Positions 7,338 to 64,000 of a stretch of DNA of 64,000 bases are shown here, in pieces. Both the position numbers and the translations under genes were made by a program. The notes beneath the pieces were generated by a model. That model did not search any database, was not told where the DNA came from, and saw only the letters and a program-made list of their open reading frames with translations. The stretch spans positions 21,018,001 to 21,082,000 of the forward strand of contig OZ059894.1 of assembly GCA_964057225.1 (NCBI GenBank), given 5' to 3'. How positions within the stretch are numbered: the stretch's first letter is position 1; each line of letters opens with the position of its first letter. The stretch comes from Auanema rhodensis (Eukaryota; Animalia; Nematoda).

Positions 7338-7372
7338 ATTTTGACAAAAATTTTTTCGAAAAATTTCAAAAT
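7338..7372. other. A/T-tract dyad p318-352
   Basis: ATTTTGA...TCAAAAT encloses the 12-bp palindrome TTTTTCGAAAAA. Confidence 0.8.
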
Positions 7373-28200: not shown

Positions 28201-28425
28201 GTTGATATCTCGGTGCATTTTTAAGCTAGCGCAAATCTGATAACACAGATCGACGCAGCTTAAAAATCCGCATCGAATGCACTATACTACATTGAGAAAC
28301 GCTTAATACAAAAATTAGTTATGATCGTTTGAAAAATGATGCATTAGTGTATGTTGAGTTTCCATGTACACTCAACATTGCTTCCAAAAACATTTTGACA
28401 AAAATTTTTTCGAAAAATTTCAAAA

Positions 28426-36498: not shown

Positions 36499-39400
36499 TA
36501 ATTTAGCAAAAAGTAGATGTTTTTAGATTCCTTTTTTCAAGGCAAAGACGATGGACAATGTTATTCAACGAAAAAATTAATTCTTCAGGGTGAAAATCGA
36601 GGATATAAGTGTGAACTTATATCAGTTGATATCTCGGTGCATTTTTAAGCTAGCGCAAATCTGATAACACAGATCGACGCAGCTTAAAAATCCGCATCGA
36701 ATGCACTATACTACATTGAGAAACGCTTAATACAAAAATTAGTTATGATCGTTTGAAAAATGATGCATTAGTGTATGTTGAGTTTCCATGTACACTCAAC
36801 ATTGCTTCCAAAAACATTTTGACAAAAATTTTTTCGAAAAATTTCAAAATAATTTAGCAAAAAGTAGATGTTTTTAGATTCCTTTTTTCAAGGCAAAGAC
36901 GATGGACAATGTTATTCAACGAAAAAATTAATTCTTCAGGGTGAAAATCGAGGATATAAGTGTGAACTTATATCAGTTGATATCTCGGTGCATTTTTAAG
37001 CTAGCGCAAATCTGATAACACAGAACGACGCAGCTTAAAAATCCGCATCGAATGCACTATACTACATTGAGAAACGCTTAATACAAAAATTAGTTATGAT
37101 CGTTCGAAAAATGATGCATTAGTGTATGTTGAGTTTCCATGTACACTCAACATTGCTTCCAAAAACATTTTGACAAAAATTTTTTCGAAAAATTTCAAAA
37201 TAATTTAGCAAAAAGTAGATGTTTTTAGATTCCTTTTTTCAAGGCAAAGACGATGGACAATGTTATTCAACGAAAAAATTAATTCTTCAGGGTGAAAATC
37301 GAGGATATAAGTGTGAACTTATATCAGTTGATATCTCGGTGCATTTTTAAGCTAGCGCAAATCTGATAACTCAGAACGACGCAGCTTAAAAATCCGCATC
37401 GAATGCACTATACTACATTGAGAAACGCTTAATACAAAAATTAGTTATGATCGTTTGAAAAATGATGCATTAGTGTATGTTGAGTTTCCATGTACACTCA
37501 ACATTGCTTCCAAAAACATTTTGACAAAAATTTTTTCGAGAAATTTCAAAATAATTTAGCAAAAAGTAGATGTTTTTAGATTCCTTTTTTCAAGGCAAAG
37601 ACGATGGACAATGTTATTCAACGAAAAAATTAATCCTTCAGGGTGAAAATCGAGGATATAAGTGTAAACTTATATCAGTTGATATCTCGGTGCATTTTTA
37701 AGCTAGCGCAAATCTGATAACACAGAACGACGCAGCTTAAAAATCCGCATCGAATGCACTATACTACATTGAGAAACGCTTAATACAAAAATTAGTTATG
37801 ATCGTTTGAAAAATGATGCATTAGTGTATGTTGAGTTTCCATGTACACTCAACATTGCTTCCAAAAACATTTTGACAAAAATTTTTTCGAAAAATTTCAA
37901 GATAATTTAGCAAAAAGTAGATGTTTTTAGATTCCTTTTTTCAAGGCAAAGACGATGGACAATGTTATTCAACGAAAAAATTAATTCTTCAGGGTGAAAA
38001 TCGAGGATATATGTGTGAACTTATATCAGTTGATATCTCGGTGCATTTTTAAGCTAGCGCAAATCTGATAACACAGATCGACGCAGCTTAAAAATCCGCA
38101 TCGAATGCACTATACTACATTGAGAAACGCTTAATACAAAAATTAGTTATGATCGTTTGAAAAATGATGCATTAGTGTATGTTGAGTTTCCATGTACACT
38201 CAACATTGCTTCCAAAAACATTTTGACAAAAATTTTTTCGAAAAATTTCAAAATAATTTAGCAAAAAGTAGATGTTTTTAGATTCCTTTTTTCAAGGCAA
38301 AGACGATGGACAATGTTATTCAACGAAAAAATTAATTCTTCAGGGTGAAAATCGAGGATATAAGTGTGAACTTATATCAGTTGATATCTCGGTGCATTTT
38401 TAAGCTAGCGCAAATCTGATAACACAGAACGACGCAGCTTAAAAATCCGCATCGAATGCACTATACTACATTGAGAAACGCTTAATACAAAAATTAGTTA
38501 TGATCGTTTGAAAAATGATGCATTAGTGTATGTTGAGTTTCCATGTACACTCAACATTGCTTCCAAAAACATTTTGACAAAAATTTTTTCGAAAAATTTC
38601 AAGATAATTTAGCAAAAAGTAGATGTTTTTAGATTCCTTTTTTCAAGGCAAAGACGATGGACAATGTTATTCAACGAAAAAATTAATTCTTCAGGGTGAA
38701 AATCGAGGATATAAGTGTGAACTTATATCAGTTGATATCTCGGTGCATTTTTAAGCTAGCGCAAATCTGATAACACAGAACGACGCAGCTTAAAAATCCG
38801 CATCGAATGCACTATACTACATTGAGAAACGCTTAATACAAAAATTAGTTATGATCGTTCGAAAAATGATGCATTAGTGTATGTTGAGTTTCCATGTACA
38901 CTCAACATTGCTTCCAAAAACATTTTGACAAAAATTTTTTCGAAAAATTTCAAAATAATTTAGCAAAAAGTAGATGTTTTTAGATTCCTTTTTTCAAGGC
39001 AAAGACGATGGACAATGTTATTCAACGAAAAAATTAATTCTTCAGGGTGAAAATCGAGGATATAAGTGTGAACTTATATCAGTTGATATCTCGGTGCATT
39101 TTTAAGCTAGCGCAAATCTGATAACACAGATCGACGCAGCTTAAAAATCCGCATCGAATGCACTATACTACATTGAGAAACGCTTAATACAAAAATTAGT
39201 TATGATCGTTTGAAAAATGATGCATTAGTGTATGTTGAGTTTCCATGTACACTCAACATTGCTTCCAAAAACATTTTGACAAAAATTTTTTCGAAAAATT
39301 TCAAAATAATTTAGCAAAAAGTAGATGTTTTTAGATTCCTTTTTTCAAGGCAAAGACGATGGACAATGTTATTCAACGAAAAAATTAATTCTTCAGGGTG

Positions 39401-41412
39401 AAAATCGAGGATATAAGTGTGAACTTATATCAGTTGATATCTCGGTGCATTTTTAAGCTAGCGCAAATCTGATAACACAGAACGACGCAGCTTAAAAATC
39501 CGCATCGAATGCACTATACTACATTGAGAAACGCTTAATACAAAAATTAGTTATGATCGTTCGAAAAATGATGCATTAGTGTATGTTGAGTTTCCATGTA
39601 CACTCAACATTGCTTCCAAAAACATTTTGACAAAAATTTTTTCGAAAAATTTCAAAATAATTTAGCAAAAAGTAGATGTTTTTAGATTCCTTTTTTCAAG
39701 GCAAAGACGATGGACAATGTTATTCAACGAAAAAATTAATTCTTCAGGGTGAAAATCGAGGATATAAGTGTGAACTTATATCAGTTGATATCTCGGTGCA
39801 TTTTTAAGCTAGCGCAAATCTGATAACTCAGAACGACGCAGCTTAAAAATCCGCATCGAATGCACTATACTACATTGAGAAACGCTTAATACAAAAATTA
39901 GTTATGATCGTTTGAAAAATGATGCATTAGTGTATGTTGAGTTTCCATGTACACTCAACATTGCTTCCAAAAACATTTTGACAAAAATTTTTTCGAGAAA
40001 TTTCAAAATAATTTAGCAAAAAGTAGATGTTTTTAGATTCCTTTTTTCAAGGCAAAGACGATGGACAATGTTATTCAACGAAAAAATTAATTCTTCAGGG
40101 TGAAAATCGAGGATATAAGTGTGAACTTATATCAGTTGATATCTCGGTGCATTTTTAAGCTAGCGCAAATCTGATAACACAGAACGACGCAGCTTAAAAA
40201 TCCGCATCGAATGCACTATACTACATTGAGAAACGCTTAATACAAAAATTAGTTATGATCGTTTGAAAAATGATGCATTAGTGTATGTTGAGTTTCCATG
40301 TACACTCAACATTGCTTCCAAAAACATTTTGACAAAAATTTTTTCGAAAAATTTCAAGATAATTTAGCAAAAAGTAGATGTTTTTAGATTCCTTTTTTCA
40401 AGGCAAAGACGATGGACAATGTTATTCAACGAAAAAATTAATTCTTCAGGGTGAAAATCGAGGATATATGTGTGAACTTATATCAGTTGATATCTCGGTG
40501 CATTTTTAAGCTAGCGCAAATCTGATAACACAGATCGACGCAGCTTAAAAATCCGCATCGAATGCACTATACTACATTGAGAAACGCTTAATACAAAAAT
40601 TAGTTATGATCGTTTGAAAAATGATGCATTAGTGTATGTTGAGTTTCCATGTACACTCAACATTGCTTCCAAAAACATTTTGACAAAAATTTTTTCGAAA
40701 AATTTCAAGATAATTTAGCAAAAAGTAGATGTTTTTAGATTCCTTTTTTCAAGGCAAAGACGATGGACAATGTTATTCAACGAAAAAATTAATTCTTCAG
40801 GGTGAAAATCGAGGATATAAGTGTGAACTTATATCAGTTGATATCTCGGTGCATTTTTAAGCTAGCGCAAATCTGATAACACAGAACGACGCAGCTTAAA
40901 AATCCGCATCGAATGCACTATACTACATTGAGAAACGCTTAATACAAAAATTAGTTATGATCGTTTGAAAAATGATGCATTAGTGTATGTTGAGTTTCCA
41001 TGTACACTCAACATTGCTTCCAAAAACATTTTGACAAAAATTTTTTCGAAAAATTTCAAGATAATTTAGCAAAAAGTAGATGTTTTTAGATTCCTTTTTT
41101 CAAGGCAAAGACGATGGACAATGTTATTCAACGAAAAAATTAATTCTTCAGGGTGAAAATCGAGGATATAAGTGTGAACTTATATCAGTTGATATCTCGG
41201 TGCATTTTTAAGCTAGCGCAAATCTGATAACACAGAACGACGCAGCTTAAAAATCCGCATCGAATGCACTATACTACATTGAGAAACGCTTAATACAAAA
41301 ATTAGTTATGATCGTTCGAAAAATGATGCATTAGTGTATGTTGAGTTTCCATGTACACTCAACATTGCTTCCAAAAACATTTTGACAAAAATTTTTTCGA
41401 AAAATTTCAAAA
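36499..41412 (+). repeat. 7-monomer (2457 bp) imperfect tandem duplication
   Basis: Variants at 37105/39562, 37371/39828, 38012/40469 and 38860/41317 recur at +2457. Confidence 0.88.
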
Positions 41413-44400
41413 TAATTTAGCAAAAAGTAGATGTTTTTAGATTCCTTTTTTCAAGGCAAAGACGATGGACAATGTTATTCAACGAAAAAATTAATTCTTC
41501 AGGGTGAAAATCGAGGATATAAGTGTGAACTTATATCAGTTGATATCTCGGTGCATTTTTAAGCTAGCGCAAATCTGATAACTCAGAACGACGCAGCTTA
41601 AAAATCCGCATCGAATGCACTATACTACATTGAGAAACGCTTAATACAAAAATTAGTTATGATCGTTTGAAAAATGATGCATTAGTGTATGTTGAGTTTC
41701 CATGTACACTCAACATTGCTTCCAAAAACATTTTGACAAAAATTTTTTCGAGAAATTTCAAAATAATTTAGCAAAAAGTAGATGTTTTTAGATTCCTTTT
41801 TTCAAGGCAAAGACGATGGACATTGTTATTCAACGAAAAAATTAATTCTTCAGGGTGAAAATCGAGGATATAAGTGTAAACTTATATCAGTTGATATCTC
41901 GGTGCATTTTTAAGCTAGCGCAAATCTGATAACACAGAACGACGCAGCTTAAAAATCCGCATCGAATGCACTATACTACATTGAGAAACGCTTAATACAA
42001 AAATTAGTTATGATCGTTTGAAAAATGATGCATTAGTGTATGTTGAGTTTCCATGTACACTCAACATTGCTTCCAAAAACATTTTGACAAAAATTTTTTC
42101 GAAAAATTTCAAGATAATTTAGCAAAAAGTAGATGTTTTTAGATTCCTTTTTTCAAGGCAAAGACGATGGACAATGTTATTCAACGAAAAAATTAATTCT
42201 TCAGGGTGAAAATCGAGGATATATGTGTGAACTTATATCAGTTGATATCTCGGTGCATTTTTAAGCTAGCGCAAATCTGATAACACAGATCGACGCAGCT
42301 TAAAAATCCGCATCGAATGCACTATACTACATTGAGAAACGCTTAATACAAAAATTAGTTATGATCGTTTGAAAAATGATGCATTAGTGTATGTTGAGTT
42401 TCCATGTACACTCAACATTGCTTCCAAAAACATTTTGACAAAAATTTTTTCGAAAAATTTCAAGATAATTTAGCAAAAAGTAGATGTTTTTAGATTCCTT
42501 TTTTCAAGGCAAAGACGATGGACAATGTTATTCAACGAAAAAATTAATTCTTCAGGGTGAAAATCGAGGATATATGTGTGAACTTATATCAGTTGATATC
42601 CCGGTGCATTTTTAAGCTAGCGCAAATCTGATAACACAGAACGACGCAGCTTAAAAATCCGCATCGAATGCACTATACTACATTGAGAAACGCTTAATAC
42701 ACAAATTAGTTATGATCGTTTGAAAAATGATGCATTAGTGTATGTTGAGTTTCCATGTACACTCAACATTGCTTCCAAAAACATTTTGACAAAAATTTTT
42801 TCGAAAAATTTCAAAATAATTTAGCAAAAAGTAGATGTTTTTAGATTCCTTTTTTCAAGGCAAAGACGATGGACAATGTTATTCAACGAAAAAATTAATT
42901 CTTCAGGGTGAAAATCGAGGATATATGTGTGAACTTATATCAGTTGATATCTCGGTGCATTTTTAAGCTAGCGCAAATCTGATAACACAGATCGACGCAG
43001 CTTAAAAATCCGCATCGAATGCACTATACTACATTGAGAAACGCTTAATACAAAAATTAGTTATGATCGTTTGAAAAATGATGCATTAGTGTATGTTGAG
43101 TTTCCATGTACACTCAACATTGCTTCCAAAAACATTTTGACAAAAATTTTTTCGAAAAATTTCAAGATAATTTAGCAAAAAGTAGATGTTTTTAGATTCC
43201 TTTTTTCAAGGCAAAGACGATGGACAATGTTATTCAACGAAAAAATTAATTCTTCAGGGTGAAAATCGAGGATATATGTGTGAACTTATATCAGTTGATA
43301 TCTCGGTGCATTTTTAAGCTAGCGCAAATCTGATAACACAGATCGACGCAGCTTAAAAATCCGCATCGAATGCACTATACTACATTGAGAAACGCTTAAT
43401 ACAAAAATTAGTTATGATCGTTTGAAAAATGATGCATTAGTGTATGTTGAGTTTCCATGTACACTCAACATTGCTTCCAAAAACATTTTGACAAAAATTT
43501 TTTCGAAAAATTTCAAGATAATTTAGCAAAAAGTAGATGTTTTTAGATTCCTTTTTTCAAGGCAAAGACGATGGACAATGTTATTCAACGAAAAAATTAA
43601 TTCTTCAGGGTGAAAATCGAGGATATAAGTGTGAACTTATATCAGTTGATATCTCGGTGCATTTTTAAGCTAGCGCAAATCTGATAACACAGAACGACGC
43701 AGCTTAAAAATCCGCATCGAATGCACTATACTACATTGAGAAACGCTTAATACAAAAATTAGTTATGATCGTTTGAAAAATGATGCATTAGTGTATGTTG
43801 AGTTTCCATGTACACTCAACATTGCTTCCAAAAACATTTTGACAAAAATTTTTTCGAGAAATTTCAAAATAATTTAGCAAAAAATAGATGTTTTTAGATT
43901 CCTTTTTTCAAGGCAAAGACGATGGACAATGTTATTCAACGAAAAAATTAATTCTTCAGGGTGAAAATCGAGGATATAAGTGTGAACTTATATCAGTTGA
44001 TATCTCGGTGCATTTTTAAGCTAGCGCAAATCTGATAACACAGAACGACGCAGCTTAAAAATCCGCATCGAATGCACTATACTACATTGAGAAACGCTTA
44101 ATACAAAAATTAGTTATGATCGTTTGAAAAATGATGCATTAGTGTATGTTGAGTTTCCATGTACACTCAACATTGCTTCCAAAAACATTTTGACAAAAAT
44201 TTTTTCGAGAAATTTCAAAATAATTTAGCAAAAAGTAGATGTTTTTAGATTCCTTTTTTCAAGGCAAAGACGATGGACAATGTTATTCAACGAAAAAATT
44301 AATTCTTCAGGGTGAAAATCGAGGATATAAGTGTGAACTTATATCAGTTGATATCTCGGTGCATTTTTAAGCTAGCGCAAATCTGATAACACAGATCGAC

Positions 44401-47400
44401 GCAGCTTAAAAATCCGCATCGAATGCACTATACTACATTGAGAAACGCTTAATACAAAAATTAGTTATGATCGTTTGAAAAATGATGCATTAGTGTATGT
44501 TGAGTTTCCATGTACACTCAACATTGCTTCCAAAAACATTTTGACAAAAATTTTTTCGAGAAATTTCAAAATAATTTAGCAAAAAATAGATGTTTTTAGA
44601 TTCCTTTTTTCAAGGCAAAGACGATGGACAATGTTATTCAACGAAAAAATTAATTCTTCAGGGTGAAAATCGAGGATATAAGTGTGAACTTATATCAGTT
44701 GATATCTCGGTGCATTTTTAAGCTAGCGCAAATCTGATAACACAGAACGACGCAGCTTAAAAATCCGCATCGAATGCACTATACTACATTGAGAAACGCT
44801 TAATACAAAAATTAGTTATGATCGTTTGAAAAATGATGCATTAGTGTATGTTGAGTTTCCATGTACACTCAACATTGCTTCCAAAAACATTTTGACAAAA
44901 ATTTTTTCGAGAAATTTCAAAATAATTTAGCAAAAAGTAGATGTTTTTAGATTCCTTTTTTCAAGGCAAAGACGATGGACAATGTTATTCAACGAAAAAA
45001 TTAATTCTTCAGGGTGAAAATCGAGGATATAAGTGTGAACTTATATCAGTTGATATCTCGGTGCATTTTTAAGCTAGCGCAAATCTGATAACACAGATCG
45101 ACGCAGCTTAAAAATCCGCATCGAATGCACTATACTACATTGAGAAACGCTTAATACAAAAATTAGTTATGATCGTTTGAAAAATGATGCATTAGTGTAT
45201 GTTGAGTTTCCATGTACACTCAACATTGCTTCCAAAAACATTTTGACAAAAATTTTTTCGAAAAATTTCAAAATAATTTAGCAAAAAGTAGATGTTTTTA
45301 GATTCCTTTTTTCAAGGCAAAGACGATGGACAATGTTATTCAACGAAAAAATTAATTCTTCAGGGTGAAAATCGAGGATATAAGTGTGAACTTATATCAG
45401 TTGATATCTCGGTGCATTTTTAAGCTAGCGCAAATCTGATAACACAGAACGACGCAGCTTAAAAATCCGCATCGAATGCACTATACTACATTGAGAAACG
45501 CTTAATACAAAAATTAGTTATGATCGTTTGAAAAATGATGCATTAGTGTATGTTGAGTTTCCATGTACACTCAACATTGCTTCCAAAAACATTTTGACAA
45601 AAATTTTTTCGAAAAATTTCAAAATAATTTAGCAAAAAGTAGATGTTTTTAGATTCCTTTTTTCAAGGCAAAGACGATGGACAATGTTATTCAACGAAAA
45701 AATTAATTCTTCAGGGTGAAAATCGAGGATATAAGTGTGAACTTATATCAGTTGATATCTCGGTGCATTTTTAAGCTAGCGCAAATCTGATAACACAGAA
45801 CGACGCAGCTTAAAAATCCGCATCGAATGCACTATACTACATTGAGAAACGCTTAATACAAAAATTAGTTATGATCGTTTGAAAAATGATGCATTAGTGT
45901 ATGTTGAGTTTCCATGTACACTCAACATTGCTTCCAAAAACATTTTGACAAAAATTTTTTCGAGAAATTTCAAAATAATTTAGCAAAAAATAGATGTTTT
46001 TAGATTCCTTTTTTCAAGGCAAAGACGATGGACAATGTTATTCAACGAAAAAATTAATTCTTCAGGGTGAAAATCGAGGATATATGTGTGAACTTATATC
46101 AGTTGATATCTCGGTGCATTTTTAAGCTAGCGCAAATCTGATAACACAGATCGACGCAGCTTAAAAATCCGCATCGAATGCACTATACTACATTGAGAAA
46201 CGCTTAATACGAAAATTAGTTATGATCGTTTGAAAAATGATGCATTAGTGTATGTTGAGTTTCCATGTACACTCAACATTGCTTCCAAAAACATTTTGAC
46301 AAAAATTTTTTCGAAAAATTTCAAGATAATTTAGCAAAAAGTAGATGTTTTTAGATTCCTTTTTTCAAGGCAAAGACGATGGACAATGTTATTCAACGAA
46401 AAAATTAATTCTTCAGGGTGAAAATCGAGGATATAAGTGTGAACTTATATCAGTTGATATCTCGGTGCATTTTTAAGCTAGCGCAAATCTGATAACACAG
46501 AACGACGCAGCTTAAAAATCCGCATCGAATGCACTATACTACATTGAGAAACGCTTAATACAAAAATTAGTTATGATCGTTTGAAAAATGATGCATTAGT
46601 GTATGTTGAGTTTCCATGTACACTCAACATTGCTTCCAAAAACATTTTGACAAAAATTTTTTCGAGAAATTTCAAAATAATTTAGCAAAAAATAGATGTT
46701 TTTAGATTCCTTTTTTCAAGGCAAAGACGATGGACAATGTTATTCAACGAAAAAATTAATTCTTCAGGGTGAAAATCGAGGATATAAGTGTGAACTTATA
46801 TCAGTTGATATCTCGGTGCATTTTTAAGCTAGCGCAAATCTGATAACACAGATCGACGCAGCTTAAAAATCCGCATCGAATGCACTATACTACATTGAGA
46901 AACGCTTAATACAAAAATTAGTTATGATCGTTCGAAAAATGATGCATTAGTGTATGTTGAGTTTCCATGTACACTCAACATTGCTTCCAAAAACATTTTG
47001 ACAAAAATTTTTTCGAAAAATTTCAAAATAATTTAGCAAAAAGTAGATGTTTTTAGATTCCTTTTTTCAAGGCAAAGACGATGGACAATGTTATTCAACG
47101 AAAAAATTAATTCTTCAGGGTGAAAATCGAGGATATATGTGTGAACTTATATCAGTTGATATCTCGGTGCATTTTTAAGCTAGCGCAAATCTGATAACAC
47201 AGATCGACGCAGCTTAAAAATCCGCATCGAATGCACTATACTACATTGAGAAACGCTTAATACAAAAATTAGTTATGATCGTTTGAAAAATGATGCATTA
47301 GTGTATGTTGAGTTTCCATGTACACTCAACATTGCTTCCAAAAACATTTTGACAAAAATTTTTTCGAAAAATTTCAAAATAATTTAGCAAAAAGTAGATG

Positions 47401-50400
47401 TTTTTAGATTCCTTTTTTCAAGGCAAAGACGATGGACCATGTTATTCAACGAAAAAATTAATTCTTCAGGGTGAAAATCGAGGATATATGTGTGAACTTA
47501 TATCAGTTGATATCTCGGTGCATTTTTAAGCTAGCGCAAATCTGATAACACAGATCGACGCAGCTTAAAAATCCGCATCGAATGCACTATACTACATTGA
47601 GAAACGCTTAATACAAAAATTAGTTATGATCGTTTGAAAAATGATGCATTAGTGTATGTTGAGTTTCCATGTACACTCAACATTGCTTCCAAAAACATTT
47701 TGACAAAAATTTTTTCGAAAAATTTCAAAATAATTTAGCAAAAAGTAGATGTTTTTAGATTCCTTTTTTCAAGGCAAAGACGATGGACAATGTTATTCAA
47801 CGAAAAAATTAATTCTTCAGGGTGAAAATCGAGGATATAAGTGTGAACTTATATCAGTTGATATCTCGGTGCATTTTTAAGCTAGCGCAAATCTGATAAC
47901 ACAGATCGACGCAGCTTAAAAATCCGCATCGAATGCACTATACTACATTGAGAAACGCTTAATACAAAAATTAGTTATGATCGTTTGAAAAATGATGCAT
48001 TAGTGTATGTTGAGTTTCCATGTACACTCAACATTGCTTCCAAAAACATTTTGACAAAAATTTTTTCGAAAAATTTCAAAATAATTTAGCAAAAAGTAGA
48101 TGTTTTTAGATTCCTTTTTTCAAGGCAAAGACGATGGACAATGTTATTCAACGAAAAAATTAATTCTTCAGGGTGAAAATCGAGGATATAAGTGTGAACT
48201 TATATCAGTTGATATCTCGGTGCATTTTTAAGCTAGCGCAAATCTGATAACACAGATCGACGCAGCTTAAAAATCCGCATCGAATGCACTATACTACATT
48301 GAGAAACGCTTAATACAAAAATTAGTTATGATCGTTTGAAAAATGATGCATTAGTGTATGTTGAGTTTCCATGTACACTCAACATTGCTTCCAAAAACAT
48401 TTTGACAAAAATTTTTTCGAAAAATTTCAAAATAATTTAGCAAAAAGTAGATGTTTTTAGATTCCTTTTTTCAAGGCAAAGACGATGGACAATGTTATTC
48501 AACGAAAAAATTAATTCTTCAGGGTGAAAATCGAGGATATAAGTGTGAACTTATATCAGTTGATATCTCGGTGCATTTTTAAGCTAGCGCAAATCTGATA
48601 ACACAGATCGACGCAGCTTAAAAATCCGCATCGAATGCACTATACTACATTGAGAAACGCTTAATACAAAAATTAGTTATGATCGTTTGAAAAATGATGC
48701 ATTAGTGTATGTTGAGTTTCCATGTACACTCAACATTGCTTCCAAAAACATTTTGACAAAAATTTTTTCGAAAAATTTCAAAATAATTTAGCAAAAAGTA
48801 GATGTTTTTAGATTCCTTTTTTCAAGGCAAAGACGATGGACAATGTTATTCAACGAAAAAATTAATTCTTCAGGGTGAAAATCGAGGATATAAGTGTGAA
48901 CTTATATCAGTTGATATCTCGGTGCATTTTTAAGCTAGCGCAAATCTGATAACACAGATCGACGCAGCTTAAAAATCCGCATCGAATGCACTATACTACA
49001 TTGAGAAACGCTTAATACAAAAATTAGTTATGATCGTTTGAAAAATGATGCATTAGTGTATGTTGAGTTTCCATGTACACTCAACATTGCTTCCAAAAAC
49101 ATTTTGACAAAAATTTTTTCGAAAAATTTCAAAATAATTTAGCAAAAAGTAGATGTTTTTAGATTCCTTTTTTCAAGGCAAAGACGATGGACAATGTTAT
49201 TCAACGAAAAAATTAATTCTTCAGGGTGAAAATCGAGGATATAAGTGTGAACTTATATCAGTTGATATCTCGGTGCATTTTTAAGCTAGCGCAAATCTGA
49301 TAACACAGATCGACGCAGCTTAAAAATCCGCATCGAATGCACTATACTACATTGAGAAACGCTTAATACAAAAATTAGTTATGATCGTTTGAAAAATGAT
49401 GCATTAGTGTATGTTGAGTTTCCATGTACACTCAACATTGCTTCCAAAAACATTTTGACAAAAATTTTTTCGAAAAATTTCAAAATAATTTAGCAAAAAG
49501 TAGATGTTTTTAGATTCCTTTTTTCAAGGCAAAGACGATGGACAATGTTATTCAACGAAAAAATTAATTCTTCAGGGTGAAAATCGAGGATATAAGTGTG
49601 AACTTATATCAGTTGATATCTCGGTGCATTTTTAAGCTAGCGCAAATCTGATAACACAGATCGACGCAGCTTAAAAATCCGCATCGAATGCACTATACTA
49701 CATTGAGAAACGCTTAATACAAAAATTAGTTATGATCGTTTGAAAAATGATGCATTAGTGTATGTTGAGTTTCCATGTACACTCAACATTGCTTCCAAAA
49801 ACATTTTGACAAAAATTTTTTCGAAAAATTTCAAAATAATTTAGCAAAAAGTAGATGTTTTTAGATTTCTTTTTTCAAGGCAAAGACGATGGACAATGTT
49901 ATTCAACGAAAAAATTAATTCTTCAGGGTGAAAATCGAGGATATAAGTGTGAACTTATATCAGTTGATATCTCGGTGCATTTTTAAGCTAGCGCAAATCT
50001 GATAACACAGAACGACGCAGCTTAAAAATCCGCATCGAATGCACTATACTACATTGAGAAACGCTTAATACAAAAATTAGTTATGATCGTTTGAAAAATG
50101 ATGCATTAGTGTATGTTGAGTTTCCATGTACACTCAACATTGCTTCCAAAAACATTTTGACAAAAATTTTTTCGAAAAATTTCAAAATAATTTAGCAAAA
50201 AGTAGATGTTTTTAGATTCCTTTTTTCAAGGCAAAGACGATGGACAATGTTATTCAACGAAAAAATTAATTCTTCAGGGTGAAAATTGAGGATATAAGTG
50301 TGAACTTATATCAGTTGATATCTCGGTGCATTTTTAAGCTAGCGCAAATCTGATAACACAGAACGACGCAGCTTAAAAATCCGCATCGAATGCACTATAC

Positions 50401-50538
50401 TACATTGAGAAACGCTTAATACAAAAATTAGTTATGATCGTTTGAAAAATGATGCATTAGTGTATGTTGAGTTTCCATGTACACTCAACATTGCTTCCAA
50501 AAACATTTTGACAAAAATTTTTTCGAGAAATTTCAAAA

Positions 50539-52995
50539 TAATTTAGCAAAAAGTGGATGTTTTTAGATTCCTTTTTTCAAGGCAAAGACGATGGACAATG
50601 TTATTCAACGAAAAAATTAATTCTTCAGGGTGAAAATCGAGGATATAAGTGTGAACTTATATCAGTTGATATCTCGGTGCATTTTTAAGCTAGCGCAAAT
50701 CTGATAACACAGATCGACGCAGCTTAAAAATCCGCATCGAATGCACTATACTACATTGAGAAACGCTTAATACAAAAATTAGTTATGATCGTTTGAAAAA
50801 TGATGCATTAGTGTATGTTGAGTTTCCATGTACACTCAACATTGCTTCCAAAAACATTTTGACAAAAATTTTTTCGAAAAATTTCAAAATAATTTAGCAA
50901 AAAGTAGATGTTTTTAGATTCCTTTTTTCAAGGCAAAGACGATGGACAATGTTATTCAACGAAAAAATTAATTCTTCAGGGTGAAAATCGAGGATATAAG
51001 TGTGAACTTATATCAGTTGATATCTCGGTGCATTTTTAAGCTAGCGCAAATCTGATAACACAGATCGACGCAGCTTAAAAATCCGCATCGAATGCACTAT
51101 ACTACATTGAGAAACGCTTAATACAAAAATTAGTTATGATCGTTTGAAAAATGATGCATTAGTGTATGTTGAGTTTCCATGTACACTCAACATTGCTTCC
51201 AAAAACATTTTGACAAAAATTTTTTCGAAAAATTTCAAAATAATTTAGCAAAAAGTAGATGTTTTTAGATTCCTTTTTTCAAGGCAAAGACGATGGACAA
51301 TGTTATTCAACGAAAAAATTAATTCTTCAGGGTGAAAATCGAGGATATAAGTGTGAACTTATATCAGTTGATATCTCGGTGCATTTTTAAGCTAGCGCAA
51401 ATCTGATAACACAGATCGACGCAGCTTAAAAATCCGCATCGAATGCACTATACTACATTGAGAAACGCTTAATACAAAAATTAGTTATGATCGTTTGAAA
51501 AATGATGCATTAGTGTATGTTGAGTTTCCATGTACACTCAACATTGCTTCCAAAAACATTTTGACAAAAATTTTTTCGAAAAATTTCAAAATAATTTAGC
51601 AAAAAGTGGATGTTTTTAGATTCCTTTTTTCAAGGCAAAGACGATGGACAATGTTATTCAACGAAAAAATTAATTCTTCAGGGTGAAAATCGAGGATATA
51701 AGTGTGAACTTATATCAGTTGATATCTCGGTGCATTTTTAAGCTAGCGCAAATCTGATAACACAGATCGACGCAGCTTAAAAATCCGCATCGAATGCACT
51801 ATACTACATTGAGAAACGCTTAATACAAAAATTAGTTATGATCGTTTGAAAAATGATGCATTAGTGTATGTTGAGTTTCCATGTACACTCAACATTGCTT
51901 CCAAAAACATTTTGACAAAAATTTTTTCGAGAAATTTCAAAATAATTTAGCAAAAAGTAGATGTTTTTAGATTCCTTTTTTCAAGGCAAAGACGATGGAC
52001 AATGTTATTCAACGAAAAAATTAATTCTTCAGGGTGAAAATCGAGGATATAAGTGTGAACTTATATCAGTTGATATCTCGGTGCATTTTTAAGCTAGCGC
52101 AAATCTGATAACACAGATCGACGCAGCTTAAAAATCCGCATCGAATGCACTATACTACATTGAGAAACGCTTAATACAAAAATTAGTTATGATCGTTTGA
52201 AAAATGATGCATTAGTGTATGTTGAGTTTCCATGTACACTCAACATTGCTTCCAAAAACATTTTGACAAAAATTTTTTCGAAAAATTTCAAAATAATTTA
52301 GCAAAAAGTAGATGTTTTTAGATTCCTTTTTTCAAGGCAAAGACGATGGACAATGTTATTCAACGAAAAAATTAATTCTTCAGGGTGAAAATCGAGGATA
52401 TAAGTGTGAACTTATATCAGTTGATATCTCGGTGCATTTTTAAGCTAGCGCAAATCTGATAACACAGATCGACGCAGCTTAAAAATCCGCATCGAATGCA
52501 CTATACTACATTGAGAAACGCTTAATACAAAAATTAGTTATGATCGTTTGAAAAATGATGCATTAGTGTATGTTGAGTTTCCATGTACACTCAACATTGC
52601 TTCCAAAAACATTTTGACAAAAATTTTTTCGAAAAATTTCAAAATAATTTAGCAAAAAGTGGATGTTTTTAGATTCCTTTTTTCAAGGCAAAGACGATGG
52701 ACAATGTTATTCAACGAAAAAATTAATTCTTCAGGGTGAAAATCGAGGATATAAGTGTGAACTTATATCAGTTGATATCTCGGTGCATTTTTAAGCTAGC
52801 GCAAATCTGATAACACAGATCGACGCAGCTTAAAAATCCGCATCGAATGCACTATACTACATTGAGAAACGCTTAATACAAAAATTAGTTATGATCGTTT
52901 GAAAAATGATGCATTAGTGTATGTTGAGTTTCCATGTACACTCAACATTGCTTCCAAAAACATTTTGACAAAAATTTTTTCGAGAAATTTCAAAA
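50539..52995 (+). repeat. 3-monomer (1053 bp) periodicity
   Basis: The AGTAGA to AGTGGA variant occurs at 50555, 51608 and 52661. Confidence 0.82.
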
Positions 52996-55509
52996 TAATT
53001 TAGCAAAAAGTAGATGTTTTTAGATTCCTTTTTTCAAGGCAAAGACGATGGACAATGTTATTCAACGAAAAAATTAATTCTTCAGGGTGAAAATCGAGGA
53101 TATAAGTGTGAACTTATATCATTTGATATCTCGGTGCATTTTTAAGCTAGCGCAAATCTGATAACACAGATCGACGCAGCTTAAAAATCCGCATCGAATG
53201 CACTATACTACATTGAGAAACGCTTAATACAAAAATTAGTTATGATCGTTTGAAAAATGATGCATTAGTGTATGTTGAGTTTCCATGTACACTCAACATT
53301 GCTTCCAAAAACATTTTGACAAAAATTTTTTCGAAAAATTTCAAAATAATTTAGCAAAAAGTAGATGTTTTTAGATTCCTTTTTTCAAGGCAAAGACGAT
53401 GGACAATGTTATTCAACGAAAAAATTAATTCTTCAGGGTGAAAATCGAGGATATAAGTGTGAACTTATATCAGTTGTTATCTCGGTGCATTTTTAAGCTA
53501 GCGCAAATCTGATAACACAGATCGACGCAGCTTAAAAATCCGCATCGAATGCACTATACTACATTGAGAAACGCTTAATACAAAAATTAGTTATGATCGT
53601 TTGAAAAATGATGCATTAGTGTATGTTGAGTTTCCATGTACACTCAACATTGCTTCCAAAAACATTTTGACAAAAATTTTTTCGAAAAATTTCAAAATAA
53701 TTTAGCAAAAAGTAGATGTTTTTAGATTCCTTTTTTCAAGGCAAAGACGATGGACAATGTTATTCAACGAAAAAATTAATTCTTCAGGGTGAAAATCGAG
53801 GATATAAGTGTGAACTTATATCAGTTGATATCTCGGTGCATTTTTAAGCTAGCGCAAATCTGATAACACAGATCGACGCAGCTTAAAAATCCGCATCGAA
53901 TGCACTATACTACATTGAGAAACGCTTAATACAAAAATTAGTTATGATCGTTTGAAAAATGATGCATTAGTGTATGTTGAGTTTCCATGTACACTCAACA
54001 TTGCTTCCAAAAACATTTTGACAAAAATTTTTTCGAAAAATTTCAAAATAATTTAGCAAAAAGTAGATGTTTTTAGATTCCATTTTTCAAGGCAAAGACG
54101 ATGGACGATGTTATTCAACGAAAAAATTAATTCTTCAGGGTGAAAATCGAGGATATAAGTGTGAACTTATATCAGTTGATATCTCGGTGCATTTTTAAGC
54201 TAGCGCAAATCTGATAACACAGATCGACGCAGCTTAAAAATCCGCATCGAATGCACTATACTACATTGAGAAAAGCTCAATACAAAAATTAGTTATGATC
54301 GTTTGAAAAATGATGCATTAGTGTATGTTGAGTTTCCATGTACACTCAACATTGCTTCCAAAAACATTTTGACAAAAATTTTTTCGAAAAATTTCAAAAT
54401 AATTTAGCAAAAAGTAGATGTTTTTAGATTCCATTTTTCAAGGCAAAGACGATGGACGATGTTATTCAACGAAAAAATTAATTCTTCAGGGTGAAAATCG
54501 AGGATATAAGTGTGAACTTATATCAGTTGATATCTCGGTGCATTTTTAAGCTAGCGCAAATCTGATAACACAGATCGACGCAGCTTAAAAATCCGCATCG
54601 AATGCACTATACTACATTGAGAAACGCTTAATACAAAAATTAGTTATGATCGTTTGAAAAATGATGCATTAGTGTATGTTGAGTTTCCATGTACACTCAA
54701 CATTGCTTCCAAAAACATTTTGACAAAAATTTTTTCGAAAAATTTCAAAATAATTTAGCAAAAAGTAGATGTTTTTAGATTCCTTTTTTCAAGGCAAAGA
54801 CGATGGACAATGTTATTCAACAAAAAAATTAATTCTTCAGGGTGAAAATCGAGGATATAAGTGTGAACTTATATCAGTTGATATCTCGGTGCATTTTTAA
54901 GCTAGCGCAAATCTGATAACACAGAACGACGCAGCTTAAAAATCCGCATCGAATGCACTATACTACATTGAGAAACGCTTAATACAAAAATTAGTTATGA
55001 TCGTTTGAAAAATGATGCATTAGTGTATGTTGAGTTTCCATGTACACTCAACATTGCTTCCAAAAACATTTTGACAAAAATTTTTTCGAAAAATTTCAAA
55101 ATAATTTAGCAAAAAGTAGATGTTTTTAGATTCCATTTTTCAAGGCAAAGACGATGGACGATGTTATTCAACGAAAAAATTAATTCTTCAGGGTGAAAAT
55201 CGAGGATATAAGTGTGAACTTATATCAGTTGATATCTCGGTGCATTTTTAAGCTAGCGCAAATCTGATAACACAGATCGACGCAGCTTAAAAATCCGCAT
55301 CGAATGCACTATACTACATTGAGAAAAGCTTAATACAAAAATTAGTTATGATCGTTTGAAAAATGATGCATTAGTGTATGTTGAGTTTCCATGTACACTC
55401 AACATTGCTTCCAAAAACATTTTGACAAAAATTTTTTCGAAAAATTTCAAAATAATTTAGCAAAAAGTAGATGTTTTTAGATTCCTTTTTTCAAGGCAAA
55501 GACGATGGA

Positions 55510-55580
55510 CAATGTTATTCAACGAAAAAATTAATTCTTACTGATATAAGTTCACACTTATATCCTCGATTTTCACCCTG
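55510..55580. other. Left strand-switch junction (tail-to-tail) at 55539/55540; blunt, 41-bp asymmetric spacer
   Basis: The junction reads ...TTAATTCTT|ACTGATATAAG. The next forward base would be C and the previous reverse base would be A, so there is no microhomology. Mirror symmetry begins at 55581 (AAGAATT). Confidence 0.97.
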
Positions 55581-58500
55581 AAGAATTAATTTTTTCGTTG
55601 AATAACATTGTCCATCGTCTTTGCCTTGAAAAAAGGAATCTAAAAACATCTATTTTTTGCTAAATTATTTTGAAATTTCTCGAAAAAATTTTTGTCAAAA
55701 TGTTTTTGGAAGCAATGTTGAGTGTACATGGAAACTCAACATACACTAATGCATCATTTTTCAAACGATCATAACTAATTTTTGTATTAAGCGTTTCTCA
55801 ATGTAGTATAGTGCATTCGATGCGGATTTTTAAGCTGCGTCGTTCTGTGTTATCAGATTTGCGCTAGCTTAAAAATGCACCGAGATATCAACTGATATAA
55901 GTTCACACTTATATCCTCGATTTTCACCCTGAAGAATTAATTTTTTCGTTGAATAACATTGTCCATCGTCTTTGCCTTGAAAAAAGGAATCTAAAAACAT
56001 CTACTTTTTGCTAAATTATCTTGAAATTTTTCGAAAAAATTTTTGTCAAAATGTTTTTGGAAGCAATGTTGAGTGTACATGGAAACTCAACATACACTAA
56101 TGCATCATTTTTCAAACGATCATAACTAATTTTTGTATTAAGCGTTTCTCAATGTAGTATAGTGCATTCGATGCGGATTTTTAAGCTGCGTCGATCTGTG
56201 TTATCAGATTTGCGCTAGCTTAAAAATGCACCGAGATATCAACTGATATAAGTTCACACATATATCCTCGATTTTCACCCTGAAGAATTAATTTTTTCGT
56301 TGAATAACATTGTCCATCGTCTTTGCCTTGAAAAAAGGAATCTAAAAACATCTATTTTTTGCTAAATTATTTTGAAATTTCTCGAAAAAATTTTTGTCAA
56401 AATGTTTTTGGAAGCAATGTTGAGTGTACATGGAAACTCAACATACACTAATGCATCATTTTTCAAACGATCATAACTAATTTTTGTATTAAGCGTTTCT
56501 CAATGTAGTATAGTGCATTCGATGCGGATTTTTAAGCTGCGTCGTTCTGTGTTATCAGATTTGCGCTAGCTTAAAAATGCACCGAGATATCAACTGATAT
56601 AAGTTCACACTTATATCCTCGATTTTCACCCTGAAGAATTAATTTTTTCGTTGAATAACATTGTCCATCGTCTTTGCCTTGAAAAAAGGAATCTAAAAAC
56701 ATCTACTTTTCGCTAAATTATTTTGAAATTTTTCGAAAAAATTTTTGTCAAAATGTTTTTGGAAGCAATGTTGAGTGTACATGGAAACTCAACATACACT
56801 AATGCATCATTTTTCAAACGATCATAACTAATTTTTGTATTAAGCGTTTCTCAATGTAGTATAGTGCATTCGATGCGGATTTTTAAGCTGCGTCGTTCTG
56901 TGTTATCAGATTTGCGCTAGCTTAAAAATGCACCGAGATATCAACTGATATAAGTTCACACTTATATCCTCGATTTTCACCCTGAAGAATTAATTTTTTC
57001 GTTGAATAACATTGTCCATCGTCTTTGCCTTGAAAAAAGGAATCTAAAAACATCTACTTTTTGCTAAATTATTTTGAAATTTTTCGAAAAAATTTTTGTC
57101 AAAATGTTTTTGGAAGCAATGTTGAGTGTACATGGAAACTCAACATACACTAATGCATCATTTTTCAAACGATCATAACTAATTTTTGTATTAAGCGTTT
57201 CTCAATGTAGTATAGTGCATTCGATGCGGATTTTTAAGCTGCGTCGATCTGTGTTATCAGATTTGCGCTAGCTTAAAAATGCACCGAGATATCAACTGAT
57301 ATAAGTTCACACTTATATCCTCGATTTTCACCCTGAAGAATTAATTTTTTCGTTGAATAACATTGTCCATCGTCTTTGCCTTGAAAAAAGGAATCTAAAA
57401 ACATCTACTTTTTGCTAAATTATTTTGAAATTTTTCGAAAAAATTTTTGTCAAAATGTTTTTGGAAGCAATGTTGAGTGTACATGGAAACTCAACATACA
57501 CTAATGCACCATTTTTCAAACGATCATAACTAATTTTTGTATTAAGCGTTTCTCAATGTAGTATAGTGCATTCGATGCGGATTTTTAAGCTGCGTCGTTC
57601 TGTGTTATCAGATTTGCGCTAGCTTAAAAATGCACCGAGATATCAACTGATATAAGTTCACACTTATATCCTCGATTTTCACCCTGAAGAATTAATTTTT
57701 TCGTTGAATAACATTGTCCATCGTCTTTGCCTTGAAAAAAGGAATCTAAAAACATCTACTTTTTGCTAAATTATTTTGAAATTTTTCGAAAAAATTTTTG
57801 TCAAAATGTTTTTGGAAGCAATGTTGAGTGTACATGGAAACTCAACATACACTAATGCACCATTTTTCAAACGATCATAACTAATTTTTGTATTAAGCGT
57901 TTCTCAATGTAGTATAGTGCATTCGATGCGGATTTTTAAGCTGCGTCGTTCTGTGTTATCAGATTTGCGCTAGCTTAAAAATGCACCGAGATATCAACTG
58001 ATATAAGTTCACACTTATATCCTCGATTTTCACCCTGAAGAATTAATTTTTTCGTTGAATAACATTGTCCATCGTCTTTGCCTTGAAAAAAGGAATCTAA
58101 AAACATTTACTTTTTGCTAAATTATTTTGAAATTTTTCGAAAAAATTTTTGTCAAAATGTTTTTGGAAGCAATGTTGAGTGTACATGGAAACTCAACATA
58201 CACTAATGCATCATTTTTCAAACGATCATAACTAATTTTTGTATTAAGCGTTTCTCAATGTAGTATAGTGCATTCGATGCGGATTTTTAAGCTGCGTCGA
58301 TCTGTGTTATCAGATTTGCGCTAGCTTAAAAATGCACCGAGATATCAACTGATATAAGTTCACACTTATATCCTCGATTTTCACCCTGAAGAATTAATTT
58401 TTTCGTTGAATAACATTGTCCATCGTCTTTGCCTTGAAAAAAGGAATCTAAAAACATCTACTTTTTGCTAAATTATTTTGAAATTTTTCGAAAAAATTTT

Positions 58501-61500
58501 TGTCAAAATGTTTTTGGAAGCAATGTTGAGTGTACATGGAAACTCAACATACACTAATGCACCATTTTTCAAACGATCATAACTAATTTTTGTATTAAGC
58601 GTTTCTCAATGTAGTATAGTGCATTCGATGCGGATTTTTAAGCTGCGTCGTTCTGTGTTATCAGATTTGCGCTAGCTTAAAAATGCACCGAGATATCAAC
58701 TGATATAAGTTCACACTTATATCCTCGATTTTCACCCTGAAGAATTAATTTTTTCGTTGAATAACATTGTCCATCGTCTTTGCCTTGAAAAAAGGAATCT
58801 AAAAACATCTACTTTTTGCTAAATTATTTTGAAATTTTTCGAAAAAATTTTTGTCAAAATGTTTTTGGAAGCAATGTTGAGTGTACATGGAAACTCAACA
58901 TACACTAATGCATCATTTTTCAAACGATCATAACTAATTTTTGTATTAAGCGTTTCTCAATGTAGTATAGTGCATTCGATGCGGATTTTTAAGCTGCGTC
59001 GATCTGTGTTATCAGATTTGCGCTAGCTTAAAAATGCACCGAGATATCAACTGATATAAGTTCACACTTATATCCTCGATTTTCACCCTGAAGAATTAAT
59101 TTTTTCGTTGAATAACATTGTCCATCGTCTTTGCCTTGAAAAAAGGAATCTAAAAACATCTACTTTCTGCTAAATTATTTTGAAATTTCTCGAAAAAATT
59201 TTTGTCAAAATGTTTTTGGAAGCAATGTTGAGTGTACATGGAAACTCAACATACACTAATGCATCATTTTTCAAACGATTATAACTAATTTTTGTATTAA
59301 GCGTTTCTCAATGTAGTATAGTGCATTCGATGCGGATTTTTAAGCTGCGTCGTTCTGTGTTATCAGATTTGCGCTAGCTTAAAAATGCACCGAGATATCA
59401 ACTGATATAAGTTCACACTTATATCCTCGATTTTCACCCTGAAGAATTAATTTTTTCGTTGAATAACATTGTCCATCGTCTTTGCCTTGAAAAAAGGAAT
59501 CTAAAAACATCTACTTTTTGCTAAATTATTTTGAAATTTTTCGAAAAAATTTTTGTCAAAATGTTTTTGGAAGCAATGTTGAGTGTACATGGAAACTCAA
59601 CATACACTAATGCATCATTTTTCAAACGATCATAACTAATTTTTGTATTAAGCGTTTCTCAATGTAGTATAGTGCATTCGATGCGGATTTTTAAGCTGCG
59701 TCGATCTGTGTTATCAGATTTGCGCTAGCTTAAAAATGCACCGAGATATCAACTGATATAAGTTCACACATATATCCTCGATTTTCACCCTGAAGAATTA
59801 ATTTTTTCGTTGAATAACATTGTCCATCGTCTTTGCCTTGAAAAAAGGAATCTAAAAACATCTACTTTTTGCTAAATTATTTTGAAATTTTTCGAAAAAA
59901 TTTTTGTCAAAATGTTTTTGGAAGCAATGTTGAGTGTACATGGAAACTCAACATACACTAATGCATCATTTTTCAAACGATCATAACTAATTTTTGTATT
60001 AAGCGTTTCTCAATGTAGTATAGTGCATTCGATGCGGATTTTTAAGCTGCGTCGATCTGTGTTATCAGATTTGCGCTAGCTTAAAAATGCACCGAGATAT
60101 CAACTGATATAAGTTCACACTTATATCCTCGATTTTCACCCTGAAGAATTAATTTTTTCGTTGAATAACATTGTCCATCGTCTTTGCCTTGAAAAAAGGA
60201 ATCTAAAAACATCTATTTTTTGCTAAATTATTTTGAAATTTCTCGAAAAAATTTTTGTCAAAATGTTTTTGGAAGCAATGTTGAGTGTACATGGAAACTC
60301 AACATACACTAATGCATCATTTTTCAAACGATCATAACTAATTTTTGTATTAAGCGTTTCTCAATGTAGTATAGTGCATTCGATGCGGATTTTTAAGCTG
60401 CGTCGTTCTGTGTTATCAGATTTGCGCTAGCTTAAAAATGCACCGAGATATCAACTGATATAAGTTCACACTTATATCCTCGATTTTCACCCTGAAGATT
60501 TAATTTTTTCGTTGAATAACATTGTCCATCGTCTTTGCCTTGAAAAAAGGAATCTAAAAACATCTACTTTTTGCTAAATTATCTTGAAATTTTTCGAAAA
60601 AATTTTTGTCAAAATGTTTTTGGAAGCAATGTTGAGTGTACATGGAAACTCAACATACACTAATGCATCATTTTTCAAACGATCATAACTAATTTTTGTA
60701 TTAAGCGTTTCTCAATGTAGTATAGTGCATTCGATGCGGATTTTTAAGCTGCGTCGATCTGTGTTATCAGATTTGCGCTAGCTTAAAAATGCACCGAGAT
60801 ATCAACTGATATAAGTTCACACTTATATCCTCGATTTTCACCCTGAAGAATTAATTTTTTCGTTGAATAACATTGTCCATCGTCTTTGCCTTGAAAAAAG
60901 GAATCTAAAAACATCTATTTTTTGCTAAATTATTTTGAAATTTCTCGAAAAAATTTTTGTCAAAATGTTTTTGGAAGCAATGTTGAGTGTACATGGAAAC
61001 TCAACATACACTAATGCATCATTTTTCAAACGATCATAACTAATTTTTGTATTAAGCGTTTCTCAATGTAGTATAGTGCATTCGATGCGGATTTTTAAGC
61101 TGCGTCGTTCTGTGTTATCAGATTTGCGCTAGCTTAAAAATGCACCGAGATATCAACTGATATAAGTTCACACTTATATCCTCGATTTTCACCCTGAAGA
61201 TTTAATTTTTTCGTTGAATAACATTGTCCATCGTCTTTGCCTTGAAAAAAGGAATCTAAAAACATCTACTTTTTGCTAAATTATCTTGAAATTTTTCGAA
61301 AAAATTTTTGTCAAAATGTTTTTGGAAGCAATGTTGAGTGTACATGGAAACTCAACATACACTAATGCATCATTTTTCAAACGATCATAACTAATTTTTG
61401 TATTAAGCGTTTCTCAATGTAGTATAGTGCATTCGATGCGGATTTTTAAGCTGCGTCGATCTGTGTTATCAGATTTGCGCTAGCTTAAAAATGCACCGAG

Positions 61501-63786
61501 ATATCAACTGATATAAGTTCACACATATATCCTCGATTTTCACCCTGAAGAATTAATTTTTTCGTTGAATAACATTGTCCATCGTCTTTGCCTTGAAAAA
61601 AGGAATCTAAAAACATCTATTTTTTGCTAAATTATTTTGAAATTTCTCGAAAAAATTTTTGTCAAAATGTTTTTGGAAGCAATGTTGAGTGTACATGGAA
61701 ACTCAACATACACTAATGCATCATTTTTCAAACGATCATAACTAATTTTTGTATTAAGCGTTTCTCAATGTAGTATAGTGCATTCGATGCGGATTTTTAA
61801 GCTGCGTCGTTCTGTGTTATCAGATTTGCGCTAGCTTAAAAATGCACCGAGATATCAACTGATATAAGTTCACACTTATATCCTCGATTTTCACCCTGAA
61901 GAATTAATTTTTTCGTTGAATAACATTGTCCATCGTCTTTGCCTTGAAAAAAGGAATCTAAAAACATCTATTTTTTGCTAAATTATTTTGAAATTTCTCG
62001 AAAAAATTTTTGTCAAAATGTTTTTGGAAGCAATGTTGAGTGTACATGGAAACTCAACATACACTAATGCATCATTTTTCAAACGATCATAACTAATTTT
62101 TGTATTAAGCGTTTCTCAATGTAGTATAGTGCATTCGATGCGGATTTTTAAGCTGCGTCGTTCTGTGTTATCAGATTTGCGCTAGCTTAAAAATGCACCG
62201 AGATATCAACTGATATAAGTTCACACTTATATCCTCGATTTTCACCCTGAAGAATTAATTTTTTCGTTGAATAACATTGTCCATCGTCTTTGCCTTGAAA
62301 AAAGGAATCTAAAAACATCTACTTTTTGCTAAATTATCTTGAAATTTTTCGAAAAAATTTTTGTCAAAATGTTTTTGGAAGCAATGTTGAGTGTACATGG
62401 AAACTCAACATACACTAATGCATCATTTTTCAAACGATCATAACTAATTTTTGTATTAAGCGTTTCTCAATGTAGTATAGTGCATTCGATGCGGATTTTT
62501 AAGCTGCGTCGATCTGTGTTATCAGATTTGCGCTAGCTTAAAAATGCACCGAGATATCAACTGATATAAGTTCACACATATATCCTCGATTTTCACCCTG
62601 AAGAATTAATTTTTTCGTTGAATAACATTGTCCATCGTCTTTGCCTTGAAAAAAGGAATCTAAAAACATCTACTTTTTGCTAAATTATCTTGAAATTTTT
62701 CGAAAAAATTTTTGTCAAAATGTTTTTGGAAGCAATGTTGAGTGTACATGGAAACTCAACATACACTAATGCATCATTTTTCAAACGATCATAACTAATT
62801 TTTGTATTAAGCGTTTCTCAATGTAGTATAGTGCATTCGATGCGGATTTTTAAGCTGCGTCGATCTGTGTTATCAGATTTGCGCTAGCTTAAAAATGCAC
62901 CGAGATATCAACTGATATAAGTTCACACATATATCCTCGATTTTCACCCTGAAGAATTAATTTTTTCGTTGAATAACATTGTCCATCGTCTTTGCCTTGA
63001 AAAAAGGAATCTAAAAACATCTACTTTTTGCTAAATTATTTTGAAATTTTTCGAAAAAATTTTTGTCAAAATGTTTTTGGAAGCAATGTTGAGTGTACAT
63101 GGAAACTCAACATACACTAATGCATCATTTTTCAAACGATCATAACTAATTTTTGTATTAAGCGTTTCTCAATGTAGTATAGTGCATTCGATGCGGATTT
63201 TTAAGCTGCGTCGTTCTGTGTTATCAGATTTGCGCTAGCTTAAAAATGCACCGAGATATCAACTGATATAAGTTCACACTTATATCCTCGATTTTCACCC
63301 TGAAGAATTAATTTTTTCGTTGAATAACATTGTCCATCGTCTTTGCCTTGAAAAAAGGAATCTAAAAACATCTACTTTTTGCTAAATTATCTTGAAATTT
63401 TTCGAAAAAATTTTTGTCAAAATGTTTTTGGAAGCAATGTTGAGTGTACATGGAAACTCAACATACACTAATGCATCATTTTTCAAACGATCATAACTAA
63501 TTTTTGTATTAAGCGTTTCTCAATGTAGTATAGTGCATTCGATGCGGATTTTTAAGCTGCGTCGATCTGTGTTATCAGATTTGCGCTAGCTTAAAAATGC
63601 ACCGAGATATCAACTGATATAAGTTCACACATATATCCTCGATTTTCACCCTGAAGAATTAATTTTTTCGTTGAATAACATTGTCCATCGTCTTTGCCTT
63701 GAAAAAAGGAATCTAAAAACATCTACTTTTTGCTAAATTATCTTGAAATTTTTCGAAAAAATTTTTGTCAAAATGTTTTTGGAAGC
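55540..63786 (-). repeat. Same 351-bp satellite in inverted orientation (23.5 monomers, 8247 bp)
   Basis: From 55540 the sequence reads ACTGATATAAGTTCACACTTATATCC, the reverse complement of the monomer from p128 downward. It continues with period 351 and no indel to GGAAGC at 63786 (p306). Confidence 0.99.
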
Positions 63787-63816
63787 CAATGTTATTCAAC
63801 GAAAAAATTAATTCTT
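63684..63816. other. Right strand-switch junction (head-to-head) at 63786/63787; CAATGTT microhomology plus one extra C, 103-bp spacer
   Basis: Reverse consensus is GGAAG-CAATGTT-GAGT, forward consensus is GATGGA-CAATGTT-ATTC, and the observed sequence is GGAAG-C-CAATGTT-ATTC. Confidence 0.96.
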
Positions 63817-64000
63817 CAGGGTGAAAATCGAGGATATAAGTGTGAACTTATATCAGTTGATATCTCGGTGCATTTTTAAGCTAGCGCAAATCTGATAACA
63901 CAGAACGACGCAGCTTAAAAATCCGCATCGAATGCACTATACTACATTGAGAAACGCTTAATACAAAAATTAGTTATGATCGTTCGAAAAATGATGCATT
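63787..64000 (+). repeat. 351-bp satellite, forward orientation resumed (partial monomer from p58, truncated by window end)
   Basis: CAATGTTATTCAACGAAAAAATTAATTCTTCAGGG from 63787 matches forward p58 onward. Confidence 0.98.

Follow-up and report, generated by a model that had tools for sequence, protein, structure and literature searches.

In human duplication-inverted triplication-duplication rearrangements (DUP-TRP/INV-DUP), the second of the two junctions has been shown to carry 1-9 bp of microhomology, to be blunt, or to contain insertions of 1-2 bp (PMC11293582). Many of these rearrangements have no long inverted low-copy repeats, and it has been proposed that triplications can be eroded after they form (PMC10766186). 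In yeast, inverted triplication takes place at short interrupted inverted repeats, whose arms of 2-14 bp lie within about 100 bp (PMC10766183). Within satellite DNA, macro-dyad structures have been stated to be documented only in Tribolium (PMC13081366). For the nematode A. rhodense, the accessible part of a preprint reports that an inbred line was assembled from HiFi reads with hifiasm, describes germline-restricted tandem repeats with units of 167-504 bp at about 29-fold coverage, and contains no discussion of orientation switches within arrays (bioRxiv 10.64898/2026.08.27.747507).

The A. rhodense DNA described here (the window, a stretch of 64,000 nucleotides analysed as a whole) consists of one satellite, with a period of 351 bp, about 31% GC and 99% matches between adjacent copies, and Tandem Repeats Finder reports two arrays only, both with a period of 351 and 99% matches. 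The unit size falls inside the range of the germline-restricted repeats mentioned above; none of four A. rhodense FISH probes matches the monomer (13-16 of 27-28 bases), and a literature search for a 351-bp satellite found nothing relevant, as did a search of metagenome contigs with a 32-base monomer pattern. The telomere hexamer is absent from the window, which thus shows no trace of a break healed by a telomere or made by elimination. Phase within the monomer (p) was mapped by placing 15-mers against the window's own consensus, after which the monomers were cut and their differences from the consensus were listed, those to the left as L0-L158 and those of an inverted block as B0-B24 in the block's own orientation.

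1..55539, plus strand: forward 351-bp array of 158.2 monomers (L0-L158), ending at p87 (phase map, monomer variants)

This left array contains local duplications spanning 2-7 monomers, and its turnover is by in-register duplications of that size, of which recent examples lie at 1756-6669 (7 monomers), 28426-33339 (6) and 36499-41412 (7), with 0-3 differences. A 1-bp deletion at about p231 is common to five alternate monomers between 18954 and 22107, where it gives a local 701-bp dimer repeat. The variant pair 34A and 59G is seen twice about 48 kb apart (3862-4212 and 6319-6669 versus 54049-55452), a recurrence pointing to an old long duplication or to long-range conversion. Three linked substitutions within 9 bp, 21A, 26A and 29T, have been amplified four times (L85, L91, L96 and L103; 29830-36498) and may stem from one mutation that changed several bases at once. 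Polymorphism in the array is highest at p176, where 60 of 158 monomers are variant. The 351-bp unit outperforms its own shuffles in folding (z = -4.2) and is rich in short inverted repeats (p104-125, p143-193, p277-304 and p326-346, for example in 53698-54048); a dimeric structure of 176-bp units is not evident in it, the top self-shift identity being 33%.

Near its right end the window changes orientation. A sequence-only reading of this DNA had described an 8247-bp minus-strand block here, in which the left flank stops at p87, the block extends from p306 to p128 and the right flank restarts at p58, and the phase map reproduces this geometry exactly:

55540..63786, minus strand: inverted block of 8247 bp, 23.5 monomers (B0-B24), p306 to p128 in its own orientation (phase map)
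55539..55540, no strand: left junction, plus p87 to minus p128, blunt, without microhomology (sequence inspection)
63786..63793, no strand: right junction, minus p306 to plus p58, with 7-bp microhomology CAATGTT and one extra C
63677..63793, no strand: interrupted inverted repeat of 117 bp at the right junction, with 7-bp arms at 63677-63683 and 63787-63793
63787..64000, plus strand: forward array restarting at p58, with 176A (63905) and 256C (63985), visible over 214 bp

The block had also been called the sole break in 64 kb, and this holds for orientation, in which the window has no other break, but not for phase, which is also shifted by six 1-bp deletions in the left part of the array. Neither N characters nor inserted foreign bases were found in the window or at the junctions, in agreement with the earlier statement that the block ends carry no foreign DNA. 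When the proposed count of junction k-mers and search for reciprocal junctions were carried out within the window, each junction 20-mer was found once, and the four possible reciprocal 20-mers were found nowhere, with one mismatch allowed. In the assembly, two novel junctions thus lie in cis without reciprocal products. With these sequences absent and the phases non-adjacent (offsets of 218 bp lost or 133 bp duplicated and of 280 bp lost or 71 bp duplicated, modulo 351), a clean, balanced two-break inversion is ruled out, as had been argued. The emphasis that was placed on the breakpoints being non-reciprocal is misplaced, since phases are known only modulo 351 and are shifted by end loss or staggered cuts, and since an event that gains copies has no reciprocal product, so that non-adjacent phases are to be expected under every explanation considered here other than an assembly artefact.

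At the right junction, the two strands meet on a 7-bp inverted repeat that is built into the monomer, formed by CAATGTT (p58-64) and the complementary bases of p300-306, owing to which the placement of the break is ambiguous up to 63793. The first C is retained from both sides, which is one base above a clean microhomology join. At least 7 shared bases with a one-base slip occur in 0.7% of all phase pairs, which is the chance per junction. Three sources are conceivable for the additional C at 63786-63787: faulty joining, slippage at a later time, or a homopolymer error in the reads. An Rfam search around the left junction gave no match. Both block ends sit 2-3 nt outside a hairpin stem, and of the four phases at which the breaks fall, three are no more than 3 nt from the end of a stem (a probability of about 0.014 by chance, in a comparison chosen post hoc); this placement may guide a genome-wide census but does not amount to a result.

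A fold-back mirror was considered at both junctions and rejected, as the first mirror pairs at the left junction differ at 4-5 variant sites per monomer and the right flank differs from its mirror, B1, by 3 mismatches in 214 bp. Neither junction being mirrored, both switches were long-range or were altered afterwards. A quasi-palindrome of 16.5 kb can be drawn around the block, and this is merely the symmetry that any inversion produces in a uniform array. The missing mirrors also bear on the view that the block is an artefact of assembly, in which chimeric reads or a misjoin set a real piece of the array backwards. The satellite is highly uniform (99%), and regions of such kind in A. rhodense are covered only about 29-fold according to the accessible part of the preprint (bioRxiv 10.64898/2026.08.27.747507). 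However, missed-adapter or fold-back chimeras mirror exactly at the junction, the window has no gap characters, and variants private to the block are repeated within it (see below), which marks it as real, distinct sequence. A pair of out-of-phase junctions, one of them on a 7-bp inverted repeat, is not typical output of an overlap assembler, and an artefact is considered highly improbable.

The origin of the block can be traced from its monomer variants, which place its closest relative on the forward strand of the same array:

42069..46805, plus strand: forward relative (source-like segment) of the block, L119 p306 to L133 p128, with 110T, 350G and 15A
46806..55539, plus strand: stretch of 8734 bp between the end of the source and the left junction, the predicted distal duplicated segment

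Here, B0-6 align in order to L119-125 with a score of 21.0, against -1.5 for the next-best placement, and B19-24 align in order to L128-133 with a score of 13.5, against -0.5, while none of 2000 shuffles of the monomer order reached either score. The longest exact match between block and source is 1532 bp (63152-61621 versus 42703-44234). The variants 15A, 110T and 350G are seen in 11 of 25 block monomers and in 17 of 31 monomers of L105-135, as opposed to 5 of 105 earlier monomers and none of the 22 monomers of L136-157, next to the left junction. Nine variants of these adjacent monomers were sought in the block and none was present, so that the block does not mirror the array beside it; 46806-55539, whose 17G, 34A, 59G and 226A are missing from the block, is not mirrored in it. 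The two template switches suggested by the sequence-only reading are supported by this local source and by the microhomology at the right junction, which together make the suggestion specific. Re-integration of an extrachromosomal piece from anywhere, which had been offered as another origin, becomes unneeded with the closest relative 8.7 kb from the junction.

Because the ends of the block match 42069-46805 in order and with few differences, the block can be described as an inverted duplicate, no longer young, of a nearby part of the array. That it is not recent is evident from 5 differences in the 4035 bp of aligned block ends, from a length that exceeds the source-like relative by about 10 monomers, with the surplus in the middle of the block, and from private variants (83A twice, 265G three times, 249A, 11G and 18A), the first two of which have been duplicated inside it. 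In addition, B9-B12 resemble L131-L134 and so run past the block's own end point, which together with the extra monomers points to a template other than the left copy in its present form. Among local tandem duplications of the array, the youngest show 0-1 differing sites in 2.5-2.8 kb, and the overall average is 0.23%; by this internal clock, the inversion event is neither among the youngest nor very old.

The right flank is where the possible explanations part. Over p58-271, four monomers alone are identical to it, L105, L110, L112 and L117; this type thus makes up 4 of 158 monomers (2.5%), all of which lie no more than 5.2 kb upstream of the source start (36.9-41.4 kb), L117 being the nearest at 950 bp. 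In 214 bp, its mismatches number 0 to L117, 1 to L133 and 2-4 to the last left monomers. By sequence, the right flank does not resemble a continuation of the left flank, and the term "insertion" used earlier is probably inapt in this respect. With a restart at one of the identical monomers upstream of the source, the layout would be that of a duplication-inverted triplication-duplication, in which one further segment would take part:

41119..42068, plus strand: candidate proximal duplicated segment, L117 p58 to L119 p305, 950 bp

Other possible starts of this segment are 39364, 38662 and 36907.

The same flank can be read as the far side of an inverted templated insertion into one monomer, in which L158 broke, the gap was filled either with DNA copied off the opposite strand close by or with a loose piece of satellite, and the ends were sealed, leaving a 30-bp target-site duplication (p58-p87). 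The left end at p87 and the right start at p58 do form a formal 30-bp direct repeat, and a source lies nearby, but two arbitrary phases yield a repeat of 30 bp or less in 8.5% of cases, and the right-flank type (176A 256C), found in 2.5% of monomers, is unlike that of the neighbours L154-L157 (34A 59G 226A). Insertion is regarded as rather improbable.

In a further possibility, a tandem paralogue of 42-47 kb already lay after 55.5 kb and was flipped in place by two breaks, with end joining that left the losses or duplications given above for the two pairs of ends; in a variant form, a double switch returned to an L133-like monomer. B24 (15A) followed by the right flank (256C) resembles L133 (15A, 256C) with 1 mismatch in 214 bp, at p176 only. 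The internal duplications and private variants of the block are what is expected of an independent paralogue, and long-range sharing of variants does occur in the array (34A/59G at L11, L18 and L154-157). An inversion in place requires, however, a change at p176, where only 1 of 71 aligned duplicate pairs differs, and a prior duplication of at least 14 kb whose boundary coincided with the break or was deleted at it, and 256C is missing from B11, the block's other L133-like monomer. The inversion with resection at both ends that had been suggested earlier would in this form need extra coincidences, and is considered unlikely, if less so than an insertion. Rough likelihoods for the restart of the right flank are 0.27 upstream of the source, about 0.025 at a random monomer and 0.014 at an L133-like monomer (~10:1), from ranges set post hoc and a p176 rate biased by the alignment. 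This result is discounted on account of the post hoc ranges and because L133 differs by one base only, at p176, where the array is most variable. The choice between triplication and its rivals rests on two bases.

We favour, with a probability of roughly 55%, a triplication, this figure covering jointly the scar of a duplication-inverted triplication-duplication made by two template switches and an inverted triplication that was later eroded. By two switches, forward copying would have halted at p87 of the last left monomer (55539) and then started again on the other strand, some 8.7 kb behind, at p128 of an L133-like monomer. Reverse copying would then have spanned about 24 monomers, to p306 of an L119-like monomer, and the forward strand would have been regained at the monomer's 7-bp inverted repeat, about 1-5 kb further upstream (L117-type, p58). 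Break-induced or microhomology-mediated break-induced replication could serve as the pathway for both switches, as has been proposed for human DUP-TRP/INV-DUP (PMC11293582). Alternatively, a full inverted triplication with fold-back ends may have formed first, and its palindromic arms may have been trimmed later by deletion; the right junction fits a short interrupted inverted repeat, and the left junction would be an eroded one. By either route, later drift would account for the 5 differences in 4 kb between block and source, and unequal exchange for the gain or loss of about 10 monomers. In this reading we infer the gain of copies, the order of the steps and the repair pathway, and that the array to the right of 64000 re-runs 41-55.5 kb. 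Several observations speak against triplication: the right flank is visible over 214 bp only and an L133-like continuation would differ from it by the p176 base alone, the block exceeds its relative by 10 monomers and includes, in B9-B12, a run that continues past its own end point, and the left junction is without homology, unlike most human cases, in which long inverted repeats hold one of the junctions.

If triplication is the true origin, one event added roughly 18 kb or more to the array and reversed part of it, giving a base-resolved example of satellite growth and reorientation other than by in-register unequal exchange. There is no function of the block to point to, and its evident effect is DNA added to the array and a changed orientation. 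It could be speculated, as a long shot, that monomer hairpins and the 7-bp inverted repeat serve as recurrent template-switch sites, and that, in a nematode whose DNA undergoes programmed elimination, satellite arrays restricted to the germline would regularly grow through inverted triplication guided by sequence. A single case changes nothing known; its value is as one data point for a genome-wide census of orientation switches, which could test the clustering of breaks at particular monomer positions.

Among known systems, DUP-TRP/INV-DUP of human MECP2 and PLP1 shares with this locus two junctions in cis, an inverted middle copy of nearby origin, and non-mirror junctions with blunt or short-microhomology joins (PMC11293582; PMC10766186). 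It differs in scale, which is hundreds of kb in humans as opposed to kilobases inside a satellite; in addition, no long inverted low-copy repeat is present here at either junction, and the third copy is a predicted one, to the right of 64000. With ODIRA in yeast, the locus shares a right junction at a short interrupted inverted repeat that already existed (arms of 7 bp, span of 117 bp), whereas its left junction lacks an inverted repeat and its arms are not mirror copies (PMC10766183). An uneroded ODIRA or fold-back triplication was accordingly rejected, as there is no inverted repeat at the left junction and mirror arms are missing at both, and the block fits ODIRA only after later erosion or conversion. 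The macro-dyad symmetries of Tribolium satellites are likewise kb-scale inverted sub-arrays within satellite arrays, but they have conserved inversion sites and thousands of copies, as opposed to junctions that each occur once in the window (PMC13081366). Human alpha-satellite, as described in the accessible part of a preprint, also shows orientation changes and inverted duplications in a homogeneous array, although over hundreds of kb to Mb, in centromeric higher-order arrays and with a mechanism not resolved at the level of the monomer (bioRxiv 10.64898/2025.12.09.693231). The kind of rearrangement favoured for this window is already known from yeast and humans, and the block is probably an ordinary scar of copying that switched strands twice.
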